This document shows positions 17,189 to 35,996 of a stretch of 64,000 bases of DNA, in pieces. The stretch is from Paramoeba atlantica (Eukaryota > Protista > Discosea). Numbering within the stretch: position 1 is the stretch's first letter; each line of letters starts with the position of its first letter. The notes beneath the pieces were generated by a model, which searched no databases, was not told the DNA's origin, and saw only the letters and a list, made by a program, of their open reading frames with translations. Where the stretch lies: NCBI GenBank assembly GCA_977017575.1, contig CDRNVI010000054.1, forward strand, positions 558,001-622,000. Reading direction: 5' to 3'. The position numbers were made by a program, and so were the translations under genes.

Positions 17189-17693
17189 ATGCGGCGCTTA
17201 ACCCTACGCACTATCGTGCAGCTCACATGTTCGGATATTCAGGAACCGTCGACTAAACGACGTAAAGTCGAAAGCCCAATACCTTCCAACACTCATTCTG
17301 CTGAAGAAACTACAAAGACGAGATCGCGTATTGCTAAAGTGAGCGCTGCGAATTTACCTCAAGAGTATCAACTCGTTCGTCTCCTCGCGGAAGTCCACAA
17401 CTTGGACGAATCGTGGAGTCTTCACACGCCAGCATGCGAGTGGGAAGGTGTGAGTTGTAACGAGCGGGAAGAAGTCAGCCACGTGAGATGGACCCAACGA
17501 GATTTGTCAGGTACTATGAACTTGATTTATCTCCCACATAGTTTGTACGATTTTGATGTGCTTGGGAACGCGCTAGAAGGGACAGTGCCTCTCACGCGCT
17601 TGCCTTCGGAACTGCGATCACTAACTCTGTACGAAAATCGGTTTGCAGGCGAGTTGGACCTGACTTCTCTTCCGCACTGCTTCGAAGATTTGG
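17189..17693 (+). pseudogene. LRR gene (KRRKVESP subfamily), 5' part, disrupted by a nested retro-insertion
   Basis: Near-identical to 35031, 44280 and 51949 up to ...CFEDLA; resumes at 22740. Confidence 0.9.
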
Positions 17694-17723
17694 CGATAAA
17701 GATACAGTTTCTGTACCTTGTTG
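17694..17723 (+). other. Spliced-leader-like relic 1
   Basis: cgataaagatacagtttctgtaccttgttg; carries the kinetoplastid SL core ACAGTTTCTGTAC followed by a 7-nt tail ending TTG. Confidence 0.75.
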
Positions 17724-17996
17724 TTCATCCTTTCTTTCCCCGGCAACGGGCATACTCTTACTGTATTTTCATGCCCGTTGCCGGCCGGCACTAACTACAC
17801 TACTACTCCAAGCTAAGCATCCATCCCGACTCGCTACGTCGGTGAAACCCCTCAGTTCATCGACGGAAATGGGACCAAAACCACTACGAGCCACAGAGGA
17901 AGACGTAACGCAGGCTCTTGCAACTTTTCACCGGGGGTCATCGGGTGGCGCTTTTGGGCTACGCCCTGAACACGTACAAGTGGCACTAGAGAACAC
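17724..17996 (+). mobile_element. 5' fragment of a CRE-like retroelement following SL relic 1
   Basis: Encodes PLRATEEDVTQALATFHRGSSGGAFGLRPEHV, resembling the RT-upstream 'F..GS.GG..GLRP.H' motif of CRE-type elements. Truncated by the next SL-headed insertion. Confidence 0.55.
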
Positions 17997-18028
17997 AACG
18001 ATAAAGATACAGTTTCTGTACCTTGTTG
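17997..18028 (+). other. Spliced-leader-like relic 2
   Basis: aacgataaagatacagtttctgtaccttgttg, 33 nt upstream of the ATG (18062) of the R2-like element. Confidence 0.78.
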
Positions 18029-21000
18029 TTGTTGTTTTTTTTTCTAAACTGTATCTCCAACATGTCCGACAATCCCACTTCTCCGCGGAATGTTGACGAT
18101 GCGCTGCCGGACCTCCCTCGAGCTTCCGGCGGCGTACAGACGCAAACCCTGCACTTCGTCCACAGCAGATCACGGCCCGTTAAGATACGACGCCTCACTG
18201 ACCTGCATTGGACGTATTTCCCGGACATTAAGACCGCGAGCCAATGGTCCATAGTCAGACAAAGAATTCCATCCCGACAAGGTGCGGAAGTAGCTATCAC
18301 GAAACTGCTGAGTAAGTGTGCATCAGCACACGATCTCGTAGCTGAACACACCACCTTTGAGGAGCTCGTGGAGCATAACGCGTGCGACTATATAAAGGTT
18401 ACGAGGAATGAACACCCCTACACCATCTCCCTGCACCCAAACTGGGTCTCGATGCACACCGACCCTGCCCTCAGCCTGCGAGACAAGTATTCCACCCCAA
18501 GCACGCTAAATAAGGCAGCCCTGAAGGCCATACAGGGAAGAGAAATATCGGGACTGAAGCACATAAAAATCGAGCTCATAAGAAACCAGGAAACACCAAG
18601 CACTGAAACCGCGGAATACGAGAAGCCGCGCAGGATAGAAGAATCCCCTCATAAAATCGCTCCCCCACGAACGCCAAAGCCCCAGAAGGGTAAAACTGAT
18701 CAACACAAGGGACCATGCAAGCACCGCTGCTTGAGCAAACTCTCCTGTGCTCACAAGTGCTGTAAAATCTATGGACCGCTGCCGAGTGAGGACGCTACAT
18801 ATTGCTCATCAGAAGGAGCACTGCCACCTGAGATCGTCCCAGAAGGAACTGCAAATAACACCAACCCAGGAGATCCAAGTAAATATACGCCGGAAAGCAC
18901 CTCTTCGGAACCTGCGACACATACAAAATGCAACACACATGCGTCGAACGGTCACCGCAAACCTACCGTACATGATGAACCTTCCGCCCCGCATCCATGT
19001 CGTCATTCCTGCAAGAACAAAGCTACGTGCGGACATCTATGTTGTAAACGAGGCATTAAATCTTCGCATCTGGACTTTCCAACTTCCGCGACTTCTACAA
19101 ATGAAAATCTACAAACGAAGCTATGCAACGCAATATCACGGGAGGGCGCTCATACAACTTTAGAACGCGGGTTAAACCCGGCAACACAACCTCCACCTGA
19201 TGTCCAAATGGTCCCACCTGCCGAGGGAACCCAAACAGAGGGGGCCGACGTCAACCAGAACTCCGTAGCACCAAACCTCAACGACAACGATAGTGATTTC
19301 CTACTGAAAGCTGCTAAATTGGCTGGTTGGGCCATGCGTAACGTTATAAACTTCTACCGCCTTCCCAATACTAGCATCAACGGACCAACAAACGGGAACC
19401 AACATACTGTGCAAATAACGGATGCGACGTGCACTGACAACAAAGATAGCACTATGCACAACCCTGCGCCACTCCCTGACGCGACGCCTAGCAGTGCAGC
19501 GCATTACCCACAGAACACCGTACACGTGGAACCATGTCGCCACCGATGCTCGGCCAAGCTACGCTGTCTGCATAAATGCTGTAAGATATATGGACCGCTT
19601 AGGTACAATGAGCCCCTCGTCCGACCTTCTCCTCTTCCTCCTCCTTCGCACACTACGGAACTTCGAGTTCCATCATGGGATGAAACCAGCGAAAGGGAGC
19701 GCCTCCATCTGCTTGAACAACACAAAACCATAACAGGGGGGAAAATGTGCCTAAAGCTTAACGACGATCAATGGAAGGCGGTTGAAAACAAGGCATACGA
19801 TACATGCCGAAGGCTGCAATATCCAACAGTAGACACCCCGGAAATCGCAGTGAAAAACGCAGAACTCCTGGGTGCCTCTCTGGCAGTGGCGGCATACGAA
19901 ATTGCACAAGAGATTAACCCCACTAAAGGTTTCCTCACGCGATCGAAACGCGGACACGCCCGATTCAAGCACCGGCCACTTTCGTCTGAAAATGCAGCCC
20001 ACGAAATGACGAAACACATACGCAACCAAAAGAAATCACTACGCTACACACACGGAACGGAACGCCAAGAGCTCCGTCGCTGCATTAAGGAAAGTGAGAA
20101 GCTAGAGAAAACATACACAGAAGAGGCCAAAGCACATAGGAAACAGCTAGAAAGACAATGGGCCCATAGCAGATTCACGCGGAACCCGTGGACAGCAGCA
20201 TCCGAGGCCTTGGACCGCCCCTCGACCTCCGCCACCGCCGAATATCCTGAATGCGATTTGCCTACGATAGAAAAATATTTCACAGAAAGCACAGCACCTC
20301 CCGCCGAAGAGCATCGCCTGCCGCCGAACAACGTACTTGGTCCTCTACCCATCAACGAAATGGAATGGTCTCCACTGACCGCGCAAGATGTCGCAGACGC
20401 GCTCAGCAGCAAAAGAAGCGCAAGCGCGCCAGGGCGTGATACGATTACAAACGCACTTCTAAAATAATGCAAATACCTGTACCCCCGTATAGCGAACACG
20501 TTTAATGATCTTCTGCGCTACGGCGTCTGCCCGCCATGCTGGTCCTCCGCCGTAGTTAAACTCATTCACAAAGGAGGCGAAAAACACATCCCGAAAAACT
20601 GGAGACCTATCTCCCTGACTAGCGCTCTAGGCAAACTTTTCAATAGCATGATCGGACACCAAATTTTGACGCATACCGTGTCCTCCGGCCTCCTAGATAC
20701 AAGCGTTCAAAAAGGCTTTCTTCCGAAGATGAGTGGTACACTGGAACACACGCAAGCTCTCTCCGAAATATTACAATATTACCGCCGAAACAAAAGGCAA
20801 TATTGTCTCACGCAGTTTGATCTCAGCAATGCATTCGGCTCGGTCCCCCATAACATCATCTTCGAGGCACTGCGATGGGCAAACGTCTCGCCACAAATCG
20901 TGTCCTACGTTGAAAGCATGTATTCACATGCGGAAATGCGTATTAAGTGTGTCGAAGGTTTGTCACGTGTTATACCGATACACAGAGGCGTACTACAAGG

Positions 21001-22739
21001 TGATACCCTGTCGCCCATAATTTTCAACTTAGTGATGGAAACTGTACTACGATACCTCAAGCAATCGTGCCCCCGGTATGGCCTTGACTACCCAGATACT
21101 CCAAGGCATTTCCTGAAAGCCTACGTTGACGACCTGACGATACTGACTAGCAGCGATACCGACATGCAGCACGCGACCAACACACTCGAAACTGCACTGA
21201 GACGAATAGGACTCTCAATCAACGTAGACAAGAGCCGTACACAGTGCATGTCCATGCGTGAAGGCAGTGAGCACCCGGGTTACATGACCAGGAAGCCGAG
21301 ACTCAGTATCGAAGGCAAAGCGATACCACATATATGTGACCGTGGAAGCACTTTTCTTGGAATGACCATAGCACCAGGAGCACAGCAAGCGAAAGAACTT
21401 TTCAAAAAGCTGGATGTCAGACTAAGAACATGGCTTCGGAATGTCGACGAGAGTGCACACAGTCTCCCCGAAAAACTTTGGATCTACAACAGAGCGATCG
21501 TATCCCGTCTGCGCTACGCCCTCACCGTTCACCCGTGTGTCACTTTCAACTTTGTATTGCGATTGCAGAAAAGAATTACGCGTCACCTTAAGAAGTGGAT
21601 CAATGCAGCATCCACGACTTGCACCGAAATTCTTTATACTGAACGAGGGTGGAACCTTAAAAGTTTATCCAAGCTGTGGTCCGAATGCTCTATCCTAGCC
21701 TTAACACAGATGCACAAGTCGCGGGACCCATCGATACAGGCGGCACTACGAGCCCGAATCAAGCAAGAAGAAGAAAAACGATCCTCTGGTTATATTCGTC
21801 CAAGCGCTGACGCCATTCAACACCTTCATGACGCGCGGAAGGCGCAACAGATAGCCCGTGATAACCATGAATCTTACGTCATAAATCAGCTTCAGAGACG
21901 GGCACCGACAGCAGCAAAATGGTGGAGCCTCCCCTCCGAGGCTGATCTCGCGAAAGAGTTCTCAGCGGCCCTGAACAACCTCAACAGTGAAAAACTTTCT
22001 CGCTTCGCAGCTTCAGTACTAACGCTTTCACCCCTACCATCCAGAACCAATCTTCGGCTTTGGGGTCTCCGGCGTGCGAGTGTAACATGTCCCATATGTA
22101 AACTCGAACCTCAAACAACAAGGCACGTGCTCTCGGGGTGCAAAGAGTCCCTTCAGCAAGGGAGATACACCCTCCGTCATGACATGTTACTTGAAGAGCT
22201 CGGAAAACACTTGCTGCGTTCGCCGTATACCGAGAGCGTACACCTAGATATCCCCGGATTTAGGAATGCCCCGGCATGGCTCGGCACCAGTGAGGACCTT
22301 CTTCGCCCCGACGGTTTGATTACACTTAAGGATGGAAGTGAGTTCATCATTGAGCTCACTGTGCCCTGGGAAGAGAACCAGTCTCAGGCGCACGAGGGCA
22401 AATCCCGTAAATATAATGCTCTCTTCCATGAACGACGCATTAATCACCCTAGGACGACCCTTGTTGTATTCGAAGTGGGAGCCCGCGGCTCGTTACTCAC
22501 ATCTTGTCGAAACCTCAACCTCCTCTTTGACGAGGACACAAAGCTTGCGGAAAAATGTCGAGAAAGTCTAATGCAGACCGCCCTTCGAGGCAGTTTCATT
22601 ATCTGGCAGAACCGTGAGTCTGCCGTTTGGACAGAAGGACGGGTATAACGTCTGTAAAAGATAGGTCTGGGCAGCGTCATATGCGCCCCCCAGGCCTATC
22701 CGCATATTCTCTGCCTTATAAAGGTATGATAAATTAAAC
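18029..22739 (+). mobile_element. Full-length R2-like (RLE-clade) non-LTR retrotransposon with a single nonsense codon
   Basis: One reading frame 18062-22648 (~1528 codons) with TAA at 20465. RT motifs SAPGRD, WRPISL, FDLSNAFGSV, GVLQGD and YVDDL; CPIC..RH knuckle; RHD, RPDG and IIELTVPWEEN nuclease motifs; short 3'UTR ending ...aaattaaac. Confidence 0.92.
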
Positions 22740-22830
22740 TTAACTGACAACAGATTCAATGGAACTGTATGTTTGACGAGTCTGCCGGTGAATATGCAAA
22801 GTGTGAACCTTAGCGAAAATCGTTTTGTCG
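22740..22830 (+). pseudogene. 3' remnant of the LRR gene begun at 17189
   Basis: tta act gac aac aga ttc aat gga... = LTDNRFNGTVCLTSLPVNMQSVNLSENRF, colinear with the paralogs, then truncated. Confidence 0.85.
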
Positions 22831-23745
22831 GGACACTTGATAACACACTAAAAGCATTGTCTGAGAACTGTGATTTGATTGAAGTTTTCTTACAAAAGCG
22901 TATTTTTTACTTTAACTACGTCACTTAACTTATTTAACTCCGCAGTTTCCAGCCCGAAGCCTGGAGCAGGTTTCTCAAGGACCGCCATCGAAAAATATAT
23001 TACTGTCCCAGGGCTACGCTCACAGTTGGGACTTGGCAAACGGGGGCTTTTGCCTCCAGAAGTGGGTTTCGCTCACAGTTCGGTCTTGCCTCCGGAGGGG
23101 AAGACTAGGCCATTCAATTTGCTAAATTGCAAAAAAATGAAAATGTCAAAAACACCTTCGATGATTACTCATCGAAAGTCTACAACTTACCATGAGTACT
23201 CATCGAAGGTCCCCCCTAGCCGTACGTTTTAGGCGTATTAAATTTATTTATTAACGGATAAATTAATATAAATTAAAGATCTCAAAACGAAAATATGGTA
23301 TCATAACCCTACCATGACCCCTAATGCAAAAAATAAGGCGGGGCGCCTTATTGGTGGCCAGGGGTTTTTAGGGGTATTTTTATTCATTTATCCTTTAATA
23401 AATGCTTTGTCGGTAATGAATGGTAGAATTCTTTTTGAATTGATGCGCAAAAGAATTGAAGAGCCTCTGCACAAGTAAAAAAAATAGTACTCCTCCTAAA
23501 AGGAGATCGCAAGGTATATACGTATGACAGAAAAGGTTTCCTGCGTCATGCACTACAAGCCATTAATGTGGCTGTACAAAAAGGCAACGCCGCTATACTA
23601 TCCTCCGCGGTAAAAGAGTGGAGGAAGGCGGGTGTCCGCTAATGATGCATGTAAGAATGACATTGCAACATAGTCGACAGGCATTGCCGGAAAAAAATAG
23701 TAGTATTTTTTAAATACCCTTAATATTTTATCTAACTTACGTGTA

Positions 23746-24459
23746 ATGGATTCCCAAGCTCCATCCACGCGCCCTTCGAAAGTTCGTGCAGTGAGTGTAC
23801 CACAAGAAATGGATCTTGAGCGGCTCACCAGCAGTTTGTACACTCATCATGAGAGCTGGAGTTCAGATGTTTCCGCTTGCAAATGGAAAGGCATCAAGTG
23901 CAACTCTGAGGAGAAAGTTACAAACATAAAGTGGAACCATTAAAACCTGAGTGGATCCATGAAATTTGAGTATATTCCAATATCCGTTGAGACGCTCGAC
24001 ATTGAACACAACTATATACGTGGTGAACTTGTCCTAAGTGACCTTTTCCCTTTAGTAAATTTTACTGCTTTCTATCTAGGGGAGAACAAATTTACAGGCA
24101 ATCCGGATCTTACCAGACTTCCGAAGCTTTCTACTGCAGCGTGGATGGAAAGAAATGAATTGTCTGGTGATATATGCCTTACACAGTTGCCCATCGATCT
24201 GGCATATCTTGACGCTAGCGATAACTTGTTAACGGGAAAACTAGATTTGGGGGCACTCCCACGCACTCTTGAATCATTGTACTTGTCTGGAAACAAATTC
24301 GAAGGGATTATAGATTTATCGCTCGTACCGGAGAAGCTAGATGCCATTTCATTAGAAAACAATGAGCTCCTCGAAGGTACAATATTCGCGAGTAAACTCC
24401 ATCGGCGGTTAAGGAATCACATTGATGTATCGAATACCAAGCTTGTGATCTTAGATTAA
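23746..24459 (+). pseudogene. LRR gene with one in-frame TAA (23941-23943)
   Basis: SKVRAVSVPQE, SACKWKGIKC and IKWNH*NLSGSMKF; both ORFs share one frame. Confidence 0.85.
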
Positions 24460-24862
24460 GATAATAATTTAATACGCACTATGAATTTATGAATTCAGAT
24501 CCCTTTCATGAAATAAAGTATTAGAAAATAATTCATAAATTATGTGATTCATAAACATTTTTATGTTTTGTCCCTTAGCTCGATAGTCCCCTAGCTACAT
24601 ACCCGTATGGAAAATATGGATTTCCCGTAAATAAATTATTACTGTTAGTACTGTTTTGTGAACCCCCTTTATACGTAAAGAATTTCAAAAGTTCAGGTTG
24701 CCCCTTCAAGACCTTCTAAAAGTGTTCTTCTAAAAGTCCTGATAACGGCAGAAGTATAAGAAAGGGGATAATTACAATTCCTAGAGTTTTAGGATTGTCC
24801 TTTTAAAGTTCCAGAAAACTGTTTGCGCGGACGTCTCACGCGGAGCTAAGCTAAAGAACACC

Positions 24863-25415
24863 TTGTTGCCCCCTCATGTGCAACTTCTTTGTTTCTTAAA
24901 GCACGTGACGAATCCGCATTCTACATGGAAACAATCCGTCTCATTAACCGAATGGGAGGGCGTAGATTTAGATGAAGACGGAAGACCCGAATATATTGAG
25001 TTCACGAACCAACGACTAAAAGGCGAACTGAGCTGGAAGTTTCTCCTCGACACGGTCAACACTTGTATTCTTTACGGGACGGAGCTGATCGGAACGATTC
25101 CATGGAGCTCACTGCCACGGGCTCTGACTTGTCTTGAGTTACAACACTGTAAATTCTCTGGTGCTCTTACCACACGGCTGAATCAGCTTCCCGAGAGTGT
25201 CTCCACACTTAAGCTCAACGAGAACCTTTTTCAGGTCCTATAGAACTAGAGGCGTTATCTCAAAAACTCAAAGTGTTTTCCATTTCAAATAATTTATTAA
25301 CCGGGGAATTTGACCTCACTCGACTTCCCCGTACCCTTCAAACGGTTTGGGCCTCTGAGAACGGCTTTACGGGCCCTTTAGTGCTTACCTCTCTCCCACC
25401 CACGCTGGGCTCTTT
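24863..25415 (+). pseudogene. LRR gene, frameshifted near 25235 and truncated by an SL-headed insertion
   Basis: TEWEGVDL cap and LRRs; the frame shifts at ENLF/SGPIEL and ends ...LPPTLGSL at the SL relic. Confidence 0.8.
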
Positions 25416-25447
25416 AACGATAAAGATACAGTTTCTGTACCTTGTTG
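25416..25447 (+). other. Spliced-leader-like relic 3
   Basis: aacgataaagatacagtttctgtaccttgttg, identical to relic 2 but followed by different sequence. Confidence 0.78.
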
Positions 25448-25594
25448 TACTTTTTTTCCTAGCTCATCATTTCTCTCCCGGACACAGGCATATTTCTACT
25501 ATGTCAATGCCCGATGAACATTTTTCCGATGAACATGTATCGGGAAAATAATAATGTAATTTGTATCAGCTTGTATCAGTTTGTAGTAAACTTA

Positions 25595-25907
25595 AACCCT
25601 GTTCCGGGTTGTTGTGCCTAGAGCTACTTATTGTGCAGGGGGGGCACAATAAGTGGAAACGACCACTATTATTGTGCCCTCCCTCTAAAATATTTTACTC
25701 CCATTTTCTCGAACATAACTGTGTTTGTTCAGCAACGCACTCGTTAAATTGAACTCATTCTGCACATGAACGTGTTTGTGCACAAAAAAGGCGCCGCGAA
25801 GCGGCGCCAATTTTTTTTTACCTTTTTTTTGGGTTTTTCCAATATTTAGTTATTGTGCCTAGAGCCAGTTATTGTGCAGGGGGGGCACAATAACCCGGAA
25901 CAGGGTT
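25595..25907. mobile_element. 313-bp MITE
   Basis: TA|aaccctgttccgggttgttgtgcc ... ggcacaataacccggaacagggtt|TA. Confidence 0.85.
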
Positions 25908-25990
25908 TACTACAGATTGAATGTAGAGTATGTCAATACGTATTACTACGAATCTCCTACAGCATCTCATATCATTTACGCCAGCACATC

Positions 25991-26714
25991 AAACAAAATG
26001 AAGGAGTTGAGCGTCGCTCTTCTCGAGCATCGCCTTACAAAATTGCAACCGTTTCTCCTTGTGTTCGAGTGTGAGTGGTGGTCGTCGCCGAAGAGTGCGG
26101 AGCACAACGCCTTGCTTCTTCAATGTGTCGACTAGGGTCCGTCGACTGCAAGTGAATCCTTGGCTACGGATCTCTCGCAGAAGATCGCTCCAGCTCTCTA
26201 CGCCGTAAACAAGGTCGCGATACCCCTCGTCGGCAAGCTTGAGAGCCACATCCAGGAACGCAGGGGTAGCCACCGTCGAGACACGCTCTCGGGATGCCGT
26301 TAACACGTCACCCGTAAGGGTAAAACGTTCAACCCAACGTTTTACAGTGTTCTCATGAACACCAAAGTGCTGCGCCGTAGCGGAGTACGATCCTGTGCGC
26401 TCGTATTCCGCCACCAAAAGCATGCGGTGACTCTCTTTGACGGGGGCGGGGGAAGAATACGATCTATCGCTCAGTACTCCACGGGAAGTCCTCGAGCGAG
26501 CGCGCTTTTGGGGCATTTTCTAGTAAAAAATGTAATTCCTGCGAGGGAAAAATGCGAAATGTTGTATCAAAAAATATGTACGTTAAAATCACAGGATTTT
26601 AATGCGCCTAAAACATACAACTCTATGAGAGCTATCCAATGCGCTATTATTTTCCAAAATTGGACAACTTTTACGAATTTTAGACCCCCCCCCACCTTTA
26701 GACCCGCACCCCTG
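25991..26714 (-). mobile_element. Truncated copy of the Tc1-like element (transposase N-terminal half plus one TIR)
   Basis: Near-identical to 12062-12783; ends ...cgcacccctg|TA directly before the next LRR gene. Confidence 0.92.
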
Positions 26715-34576: not shown

Positions 34577-35030
34577 TATATGAACCTGGTGTCTAATATT
34601 TCACTGGGGTCGGAATCTGGTTTATTAAGACAGCGTCGTTAATCCATTTCTGTTCGAACTATTTCTCATGTTACTCGTATTACGACTTGATGCAATGTCG
34701 CTGTTACGAGACTGTGGTTCTGCAGCATTTCGATGTCCAGGTATCCATCTTATGCTGAGGTGTAACTTCTTTTCTACCTTCCATTTCGAAATAAATCTTA
34801 CGATCGAGAAAAAGCGAGACACTGCGATATCTTTTCGCAATTTCGATTTTTGTGGCGATCTTGTCTGTGGCGAGAGCCATTCTTTATTGTGCAACAATTT
34901 CGAAAGTTCCGTGTAGTTCAAAAAAAGGTACTTTGTCTGAGAAATGTTTCCGAACAACGCGGTATAAACCACTAAAAACAATGTCTAAAAATAATTAACT
35001 TTCATTATATAAATTGCCTTCTCACTTTAC

Positions 35031-35996
35031 ATGCGGCGCTTAGCCCTACGCACTATCGTGCAGCTCACATGTTCGGATATTCAGGAACCGTCGACTAAAC
35101 GACGTGAAGTCGAAAGCCCAATACCTTCCAACACTCATTCTGCTGAAGAAACTACAAAGACGAGATCGCGTATTGCTAAAGTGAGCGCTGCGAATTTACC
35201 TCAAGAGTATCAACTCGTTCGTCTCCTCGCGGAAGTCCACAACTTGGACGAATCGTGGAGTCTTCACACGCCAGCATGCAAGTGGGAAGGTGTGAGTTGT
35301 AACGAGCGGGAAGAAGTCAGCCGCGTGGAATGGGGTCGACTACATTTGTCAGGTACTATGAACTTGGTTCATCTCCCACATAGTCTGTACGATTTTGCTG
35401 TGCCTGGGAACGCGCTAGAAGGGACAGTGCCGCTCACGCGCTTGCCTTCGGAACTGCGATCGCTAGCTCTGTACGTAAATCGGTTTGAAGGCGAGTTGGA
35501 CTTGACTTCTCTTCCGCACTGCTTCGAAGATTTGGCGTTAAATCACAACAGGTTCAATGGAATTGTGTGTTTGACGAGTCTGCCGGTCAATATGCAAAAT
35601 GTAGACCTTGGCGGAAATCGTCTTACCGGCTCACTTGATTTGACGAGCCTGCCCGCTAATATGCAAAGTGTAAACCTTAGCGAAAATTGTCTTACCGGGC
35701 CACTTGATTTGACTTTGCTTCCGCCTAACATATCGCAAGTATATCTCTCTGGAAATCAGCTGTCCGGCGAACTCGATCTCCGACAACTTCCTGCAAGTAT
35801 TTTTCGACTTGATTTGTCGCAGAATAAGTTTTCTGGTGATGTGGACTTGACGAACCTTCCATCTTTCTTGATGACTTTGGACTTATCAGATAATGTGGAC
35901 TTGTGTGGCAACATAACAAGATCGCCATTTCCTGAAGATATGCAAGAGTTCGGTTTGGGCGTATATAACACACAGATAAATGTAGGGGATTATTGA
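35031..35996 (+). CDS. LRR protein (321 aa; one repeat longer than its sister copies)
   Basis: AKVSAANLPQEYQLVRL, PACKWEGVSC and about 8 LRRs. Confidence 0.92.
   Translation: MRRLALRTIVQLTCSDIQEPSTKRREVESPIPSNTHSAEETTKTRSRIAKVSAANLPQEYQLVRLLAEVHNLDESWSLHTPACKWEGVSCNEREEVSRVEWGRLHLSGTMNLVHLPHSLYDFAVPGNALEGTVPLTRLPSELRSLALYVNRFEGELDLTSLPHCFEDLALNHNRFNGIVCLTSLPVNMQNVDLGGNRLTGSLDLTSLPANMQSVNLSENCLTGPLDLTLLPPNISQVYLSGNQLSGELDLRQLPASIFRLDLSQNKFSGDVDLTNLPSFLMTLDLSDNVDLCGNITRSPFPEDMQEFGLGVYNTQINVGDY

Follow-up and report, generated by a model that had tools for sequence, protein, structure and literature searches.

A 64,000-nt window of the Paramoeba atlantica genome (assembly GCA_977017575.1, contig CDRNVI010000054.1, positions 558,001 to 622,000) carries, on the + strand, three DNA copies of the organism's own spliced-leader (SL) exon, each of which forms the 5' edge of inserted retroelement sequence. 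Probably, the RNAs that served as templates of target-primed reverse transcription bore the leader as their 5' terminus, and the strings were written into the genome for this reason. An earlier sequence-only reading of the window, in which the leader was taken as part of the reverse-transcribed template rather than as a target site, is thus largely supported. According to this explanation, the elements would be transcribed within host polycistrons, and their RNAs would be trans-spliced, in the manner of mRNAs, at an AG acceptor before the 5' untranslated region (UTR). The reverse transcriptase (RT) of the element would start copying at the 3' end of such an RNA and proceed into the leader, and the 5' end of the cDNA would join the target at a variable point within the leader.

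Identity of the spliced leader and its genomic copies

An exact 30-mer common to the three copies lies on the + strand at 17694, 17999 and 25418 (coordinates refer to the window unless a contig or locus is named), where zero matches are expected by chance. Including the adjoining leader bases, copy 2 extends from 17997 (32 nt) and copy 3 from 25412 (up to 36 nt). The complete leader, of kinetoplastid type, measures 38 nt, and the 30-mer represents its 3' part. Among the genomic hits followed by GTA, one class is that of the SL RNA genes, which read AACTTTAACGATAAAGATACAGTTTCTGTACCTTGTTG and then GTATGAGAAGCTTCG..., the latter being the conserved beginning of kinetoplastid SL introns. It is because this gene class reads from the leader into the intron that the leader can be set at 38 nt, and that the genes can be recognised as a small minority of its genomic copies. 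SL RNA genes with an intron, the start of which is GTATGAGAAG, number about 40 genome-wide and include tandem arrays with a period of ~2.56 kb on two contigs; 5S rRNA genes adjoin them in the one cluster that was fetched. The string is therefore the host leader, as had been proposed from the letters of the window.

The 23-mer core of the leader is dispersed in at least 700 exact copies over the 45.7-Mb genome, and the intron continues after only about 40 of these; the bulk of the copies thus lies outside the SL RNA genes. Among 49 distinct SL copies that were sampled, 48 do not have the intron start GTATGAGAAG next to the leader, and the same holds for all three window copies, none of which is followed by GT, as already stated in the sequence-only reading. 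Two of the 48 sampled relics terminate in ...GTTT instead of ...GTTG. In a sequencing run that we guess to be RNA, a high-depth contig shows the SL continuing into other sequence, with several different continuations as loose ends.

The surroundings of the SL RNA genes were inspected at one locus, L044 (C3:779000-788999). Here, they alternate with 5S rRNA genes of the opposite strand, and an SL-headed copy of a short interspersed element (SINE), of the family described below, is found ~4.5 kb downstream of them.

A chimeric insertion in a leucine-rich repeat gene

Copies 1 and 2 belong to one insertion of ~5.05 kb in a single leucine-rich repeat (LRR) gene. Its parts are, in order, an SL relic with a segment A1, a segment A2, a short filler, the second SL relic and a long interspersed element (LINE), B. 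The 5' part of the host gene (17189..17693, + strand), identified by its open reading frame (ORF) and an LRRNT_2 match, stops with ...E-D-L-A at a fixed LRR position, L-P-x5-L-x / L-x-x-N. The gene resumes directly 3' of B, and this continuation (22742..22880, + strand) aligns to paralogues directly past the end point of the left flank. In the closest paralogue without insertion (window 34644-35640), which is 97.2% identical on the left (34644-35535), both flanks are contiguous. The empty site reads ...gaagatttggcg followed by ttaaa..., with ...ttggcg directly before ttaaa at the join. Such empty-site forms are present in read contigs as well as in the genome, and the insert-skipping joints in the read contigs derive from LRR paralogues, not from an empty allele. 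No SL was found at the paralogous empty sites examined.

SL relic 1 (17694..17723, + strand) is an exact match and heads A1. Its first two bases, 'cg', are common to the target paralogue and possibly belong to the target, so that 28-30 nt of leader (SL nt 9/11-38) are counted. A1 (17724..17794, + strand) corresponds to nt 1-71 of a SINE-like retroposon of ~580 bp in its short 5' form, and is 100% identical to many genomic copies; it holds a 16-bp hairpin with stems at 17738-17753 and 17771-17788 (fold z = -5.35). A2 (17795..17991, + strand) comprises ~199 nt from the interior of a different LINE family, in sense orientation, and matches at least nine copies at 97-98% identity. In these copies, the equivalent stretch belongs to a long ORF and immediately precedes the part for the RT domain, and the ORF of this source LINE encodes LsmAD-like and RT domains. 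The filler aacac (5 nt; 17992..17996, + strand) begins where the A2 consensus diverges, past ...ctagag, and may have arisen without a template or represent a corrupted copy of SL nt 1-6. SL relic 2 (17997..18028, + strand), 32 nt in length (SL nt 7-38), heads B.

A1, A2 and B all have the same orientation. The 3' end of the element is included in B alone, A1 and A2 being without their 3' parts, and leader-marked 5' ends are retained in A1 and B. No other copy in the genome spans the A1/A2 junction, and the junction of A2, filler and SL relic 2 has no second occurrence in the genome. Co-orientation, one target site, a complete 3'-most part and unique junctions, i.e. the marks of a template-switch chimera, are thus all found in this insertion. 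R2 enzymes jump between templates, and we infer that the chimera arose by template switching, copies 1 and 2 being the product of a single reverse-transcription event with two switches. An R2-type RT would have started at the LRR-gene target and copied a complete SL-headed LINE RNA. From the 5' end of this RNA it would have jumped to an internal site of the RNA of another LINE, of which 199 nt would have been copied, and a second jump would have led to a SINE RNA, whose first 71 nt and leader would have been copied before the joining to the target. The jump at the leader-marked 5' end of the B RNA supports the leader as the physical 5' terminus of the template. Had the insertions been nested, the 3' remainders of A2 and A1 should lie on the 3' side of B, where neither is present.

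The domain arrangement of the A2 source family is uncommon in its own right. At L047 (C48:224118-227315) and in its relatives, the LsmAD-like domain (Pfam PF06741, 7e-09) is situated N-terminal of the reverse transcriptase, which makes for an unusual partner.

The R2-type element and its copies

B (18029..22741, + strand) is a full-length R2-type LINE with RT and restriction-like endonuclease (RLE). A T-rich 5' UTR (18029-18061) precedes an ORF (18062-22648) that is split in the window by a single in-frame stop (20465-20467), as checked against an intact copy. The 3' end consists of a small stem and then ATGATAAATTAAA, the final ~5 nt of which may be target. The protein matches RVT_1 (3e-32) and R2 proteins in PDB (4e-32), the latter over residues 794-1500, from the RT through the C-terminus. 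The C-terminal elements C-x2-C...H...C, RPD, E-L-T-V and K..KY align to the R2 RLE domain, albeit in a weak alignment, and CCHC and PD...E...K motifs (PD-(D/E)xK-type) are aligned to R2. Six further copies are 98.5-99.4% identical, two of them with one 1550-aa ORF.

The seven B copies are found at six different flanks, L070 and L071 having a common one; apart from this pair, the upstream flanks of SL-headed copies differ by locus. Most sampled B flanks are LRR genes, interrupted in sense orientation directly after L-P-x5-L(-x), and the flank of the pair L070/L071 is an AT-rich repeat. The leader on the seven copies starts at differing nucleotides, with 22-33 nt kept, and the 3' end (small stem and ATGATAAATTAAA) is constant. 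The junction between SL and UTR is preserved in a subfamily that is only 85% identical (L064/L065). No 5' transduction of the upstream flank is seen in the B copies, SL nt 1-6 are encoded in none of those examined, and no SL remainder is present downstream of the elements. The differing upstream flanks, the variable cut within the leader, the lack of an SL downstream and one junction past a polypyrimidine tract and AG (see below) identify the leader as part of the insert and not of the target, in agreement with the sequence-only reading. A search of the window with Rfam gave no family at the gathering score, with no dedicated ribozyme search run; the upstream SL that is retained argues against 5' self-cleavage, as by a ribozyme of the hepatitis delta virus (HDV)-like type. 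Two further R2-like families of the same organism, recovered from a second assembly and with 56% and 45% protein identity to B, also begin with an SL relic.

Two additional observations concern B. At L066 (C20:396800-402800), a B copy is interrupted by an SL-headed SINE copy at locus position ~4086, i.e. the elements land in each other. Furthermore, positions 18046-18056 of the B 5' UTR form an 11-nt perfect complement (AAACTGTATCT) to 18011-18021, corresponding to SL nt 15-25, and this complement is retained in the 85%-identical subfamily. A role as SL docking site was considered and rejected: the fold is no better than that of shuffles (z = -1.0), and the complement is imperfect in a related family.

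The SINE-like family and the third copy

SL relic 3 (25412..25447, + strand) is located in the next LRR gene, at the L-P-x5-L position. Its length is 28-36 nt, the 5' limit being ambiguous because up to 7-8 nt (cTTTAAc) could be target codons. The adjoining segment C (25448..25516, + strand) was identified by blastn against family members and by alignment as the long-form 5' UTR of the SINE-like family without the first G. C is ~80% identical to the sampled SINE subfamilies, beside a perfect SL. The remainder of C is lost or interrupted by DNA-transposon sequence, its 3' boundary is lost, and the locus has no close paralogue for comparison. Copy 3 would stem from an insertion of its own, in which a SINE entered the corresponding LRR position and was subsequently broken up by DNA transposons. 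One statement of the sequence-only reading has to be withdrawn at this point, namely that unrelated sequence follows each copy; copies 1 and 3 continue homologously, both with the 5' UTR of this one SINE-like family.

The 14 sampled SINE copies show differing flanks, a variable 5' cut within the SL and a constant 3' end, as observed for B. At L031, at L055 and for window copy C, the flank is an LRR gene in sense orientation, cut directly after L-P-x5-L(-x); several other SINE copies have non-LRR flanks. The SINE and B have a 3'-terminal stem and a ATGATAAA tail in common, as expected of a LINE/SINE pair. The long form of the SINE begins with GTAC and is distinct from the SL intron start GTATGAGAAG. 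A derivation of the SINE from SL RNA was rejected, as it has only GTA in common with the intron.

Directly 3' of C, the window contains a MITE-like element (miniature inverted-repeat transposable element) with ~60-nt terminal inverted repeats (25583-25920), and beside it a 175-aa ORF on the - strand (25989-26516) with a helix-turn-helix domain of Tc1/Tc3-type transposases.

Signatures of probable trans-splicing and leader renewal

In the long form of the SINE, the leader is followed by GTAC(T/A)TTTTCC..TTAG and then by TTCATC. In copy 1, the SL is joined exactly past the pyrimidine tract and AG of this long form; the bases of A1 come after ...CTTTTTCCTTAG in the long form at L055. This short junction occurs 17 times genome-wide, in three subfamily variants, and is predicted if a leader-headed daughter is re-expressed and trans-spliced at the next AG. 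Stacked relics, in which one leader directly precedes another, were counted at 88 places genome-wide (e.g. C20:57441-57478, C35:33558-33595 and C63:378801-378838), none of them in the window; three triple stacks were seen. At 11-13 places, the new SL sits past an internal ACAG of the relic SL, and at two places past AAAG.

The leader and the sequence behind it differ in their degree of conservation. In a rough comparison, the SL part has a mean pairwise identity of 0.945, against 0.64 for the ~110 nt behind it; one row of the set used was misclassified, and the chimeric A copy was among its members. An SL that is identical to that of the host next to a diverged UTR argues for renewal from the host over inheritance. 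Together with the AG-linked junction, this points to trans-splicing as the likely source of the leader in each generation.

The phenomenon extends beyond the R2-type and SINE-like elements. Poly(A)-tailed LINEs with LsmAD and RT domains are also SL-headed, and they are often arranged head to tail, with the SL directly past the poly(A) of the previous copy. We consider it an evenly balanced matter whether the following, broader statement holds: that several unrelated retrotransposon lineages (R2-type LINEs, their SINE-like partner and poly(A)-type LINEs) routinely use host trans-splicing to make and cap their 5' ends, the leader being renewed every generation and copied to DNA almost to the cap.

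Further observations on the leader junctions were made at other loci. In the poly(A)-type LINEs at L005-L030, on other contigs, the relic usually runs from SL nt 3 (CTTTAACG...), and the base that precedes it varies between T, C and A. The relics of the LRR-targeting R2/SINE group run from SL nt 6-22. The cap-proximal nucleotides of the SL seem to be copied unfaithfully, for which cap-4 modifications may be a cause. At L005, L007, L016, L017 and L084, the first UTR bases right past the SL read AATTATTT(T/C)C and are common to unrelated families (LsmAD-type LINEs and an R2-like family). At L028 (C2:553082 region), an inverted partial SL (GGTACAGAAACTGTAT) abuts the forward relic at the 5' end of an RT-bearing element, giving a snap-back-like junction. 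No kinetoplastid SL was found near P0015 and P0019, two distant RT homologues from other assemblies.

Origin of the leader in the inserted sequences

Several of the results weigh against the copying of trans-spliced templates. The commonest stack, SL/TACCTTGTTG, accounts for 40 of the 88 cases and has its boundary past TG, not AG; this class may be one propagated subfamily or reflect repeated events. The B junction contains small inserts (TTGTTG in the window; CTTGTTG, AATA and A elsewhere) that are not acceptor-linked. These micro-variants and the TG stacks look like the outcome of RT slippage or jumping, or like one variant that was propagated. Moreover, the daughters have no AG at the junction of SL and UTR (TTG followed by TTTT... 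or by GTAC). The same junction is thus not regenerable by canonical trans-splicing, and acceptor-bearing sources must be assumed. The counts of recurrent junctions and of stacks may include copies propagated from one event, and the contigs from public runs break at the SL repeat, the junctions being neither confirmed nor refuted by read contigs.

Part of these results would be accounted for if the leader had been acquired once by the ancestor of each family and were heritable, being re-copied from read-through transcripts. Daughters without AG at the junction fit such a scenario, and so does the SL/UTR junction of B, which persists in the 85%-identical subfamily (L064/L065). We nevertheless regard it as unlikely, as the B copies show no 5' transduction of the upstream flank, and as the SL varies between 22 and 33 nt among near-identical copies and measures up to 36-38 nt in other families, which a truncated parent cannot yield. 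The SL also remains host-identical while the UTR diverges, and AG-linked short junctions and AG-linked stacks exist. Yet more doubtful is an addition of the leader during reverse transcription, in which case the R2-type enzyme, at the 5' end of an uncapped element RNA, would continue on a free SL exon, entered at its 3' end, or on another SL-bearing RNA. R2 reverse transcriptases reportedly jump end to end between templates (work of Bibillo and Eickbush from 2002), the window itself holds two template jumps, and neither the junction micro-variants nor the 40 SL/TACCTTGTTG stacks are explained by AG acceptors. However, the junction coincides with the exact exon end in nearly all sampled copies and in many families, poly(A)-type LINEs included. 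The SL intron was co-copied in 0 of the 48 sampled relics, although intact SL RNA should far outnumber the free SL exon. The two jumps documented in the window hit arbitrary internal sites and brought in non-SL sequence, and the short SINE junction lies directly past a polypyrimidine tract and AG.

Two further explanations fare worse. The contig could be an assembly artefact into which cDNA or chimeric reads were built, and the break of public-run contigs at the SL repeat is compatible with that. Still, one LRR gene bounds the insert on both sides, the same architecture with clean target flanks is repeated at hundreds of loci, SL-headed elements are likewise present in a second assembly of the organism, and the element bodies are present in DNA runs, which renders an artefact very improbable. 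The least probable alternative is that the SL is target sequence, due to a SLACS/CZAR/CRE-like insertion into SL RNA genes or SL-like sites. B does belong to the RLE-bearing R2/CRE type, and its 3' tail (GATAAA) and LRR target (TTAAA/TTAAC) are faintly SL-like. By contrast, LRR codons or other unrelated sequence make up the upstream flanks, no SL-like sequence is found 3' of the elements, and no intron is present; the empty-site paralogues without SL already contradict this explanation.

Implications of the proposed leader-bearing templates

The preferred explanation, i.e. reverse transcription of RNAs with a leader at their 5' end, bears on a general difficulty of retrotransposons without long terminal repeats (non-LTR elements), which lose their upstream promoter with each move. 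The known solutions are internal promoters, 5' ribozymes and insertion into transcribed host genes. In a polycistronic genome, mRNA-like trans-splicing would yield a capped, exportable and translatable element RNA at no cost. If true, this would constitute a way of making 5' ends that differs from both the internal promoters and the ribozymes of non-LTR elements, and the relics would be direct DNA evidence of trans-spliced RNAs as templates. They would also provide a genome-wide, datable record of RNA 5' ends, acceptor choice and RT template jumps. As a relic tags the true 5' end of a template, template-switch chimeras, alternative acceptors and repeated recycling become readable from the sequence alone. 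In addition, the families repeatedly hit one LRR codon position and may shape a large surface-protein-like gene family.

Comparison with known systems

In the literature searched, no report of leader-headed retrotransposons in kinetoplastids was found, and a search for the SL sequence itself gave no paper. New in the present analysis are the template-switch chimera, the AG-linked short junction, the census of stacked relics and the argument from SL versus UTR divergence. In surveys of kinetoplastid mobile elements, CRE/SLACS appear solely as elements that insert into SL genes (PMC12278014). SLACS, CZAR and CRE1-2 of trypanosomatids resemble the elements described here in being RLE-type non-LTR elements with one long ORF, in their site specificity and in their association with the SL. 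They occupy a fixed exon position in the SL RNA gene, with SL target DNA on both sides, whereas the SL is here inside the insert and at the 5' end only. SL gene sequence on both sides was not found at the loci examined. Moreover, the target of B is an LRR coding motif, and its tail is not poly(A).

The nearest parallel so far described to the chimeric insertion is that of the LINE-1 chimeras (U6/L1 and others; PMC13174262), in which co-oriented RNA pieces likewise lie within one pair of flanks, the 3'-most piece being complete and the upstream pieces stopping at the junctions. It differs from these in the R2-type enzyme, in two successive jumps and in that two of the three templates have their true 5' end marked by the leader. 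For Schistosoma mansoni, the SL was noted inside six transposable-element gene models, and trans-spliced, retro-transcribed elements were suggested (PMC5832876). That suggestion was a passing remark, with assembly error left open, while junctions, flanks, copy families and acceptor use are documented here. In L1Tc/ingi, the Pr77 internal promoter yields unspliced transcripts (PMC1874656, PMC8190864). The Pr77/HDV-like 5' ends of these elements concern the same difficulty as the present ones, namely how a non-LTR element of a kinetoplastid comes by a defined and translatable 5' end amid polycistronic transcription. L1Tc/ingi rely on an internal promoter for this, and the elements described here have the host leader instead.

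The recycling of mRNAs in dinoflagellates, with DinoSL relics and DinoRL, was reportedly described by Slamovits and Keeling in 2008. SL relics on retroposed host genes are established in these organisms (PMC5585692, PMC12014239). As in the present case, a DNA-encoded host SL is found at the 5' end of retroposed sequence. For DinoRL, stacked relics are described in which the older leader was cut at an internal AG upon re-expression (PMC12014239). The host here is of kinetoplastid type, and many of the stacks are not AG-linked. The sequences tagged in dinoflagellates are host genes (retrogenes), whereas here the leader is carried by retrotransposons in their own right, namely an R2-type LINE together with its SINE-like partner, and LINEs of the poly(A) type.

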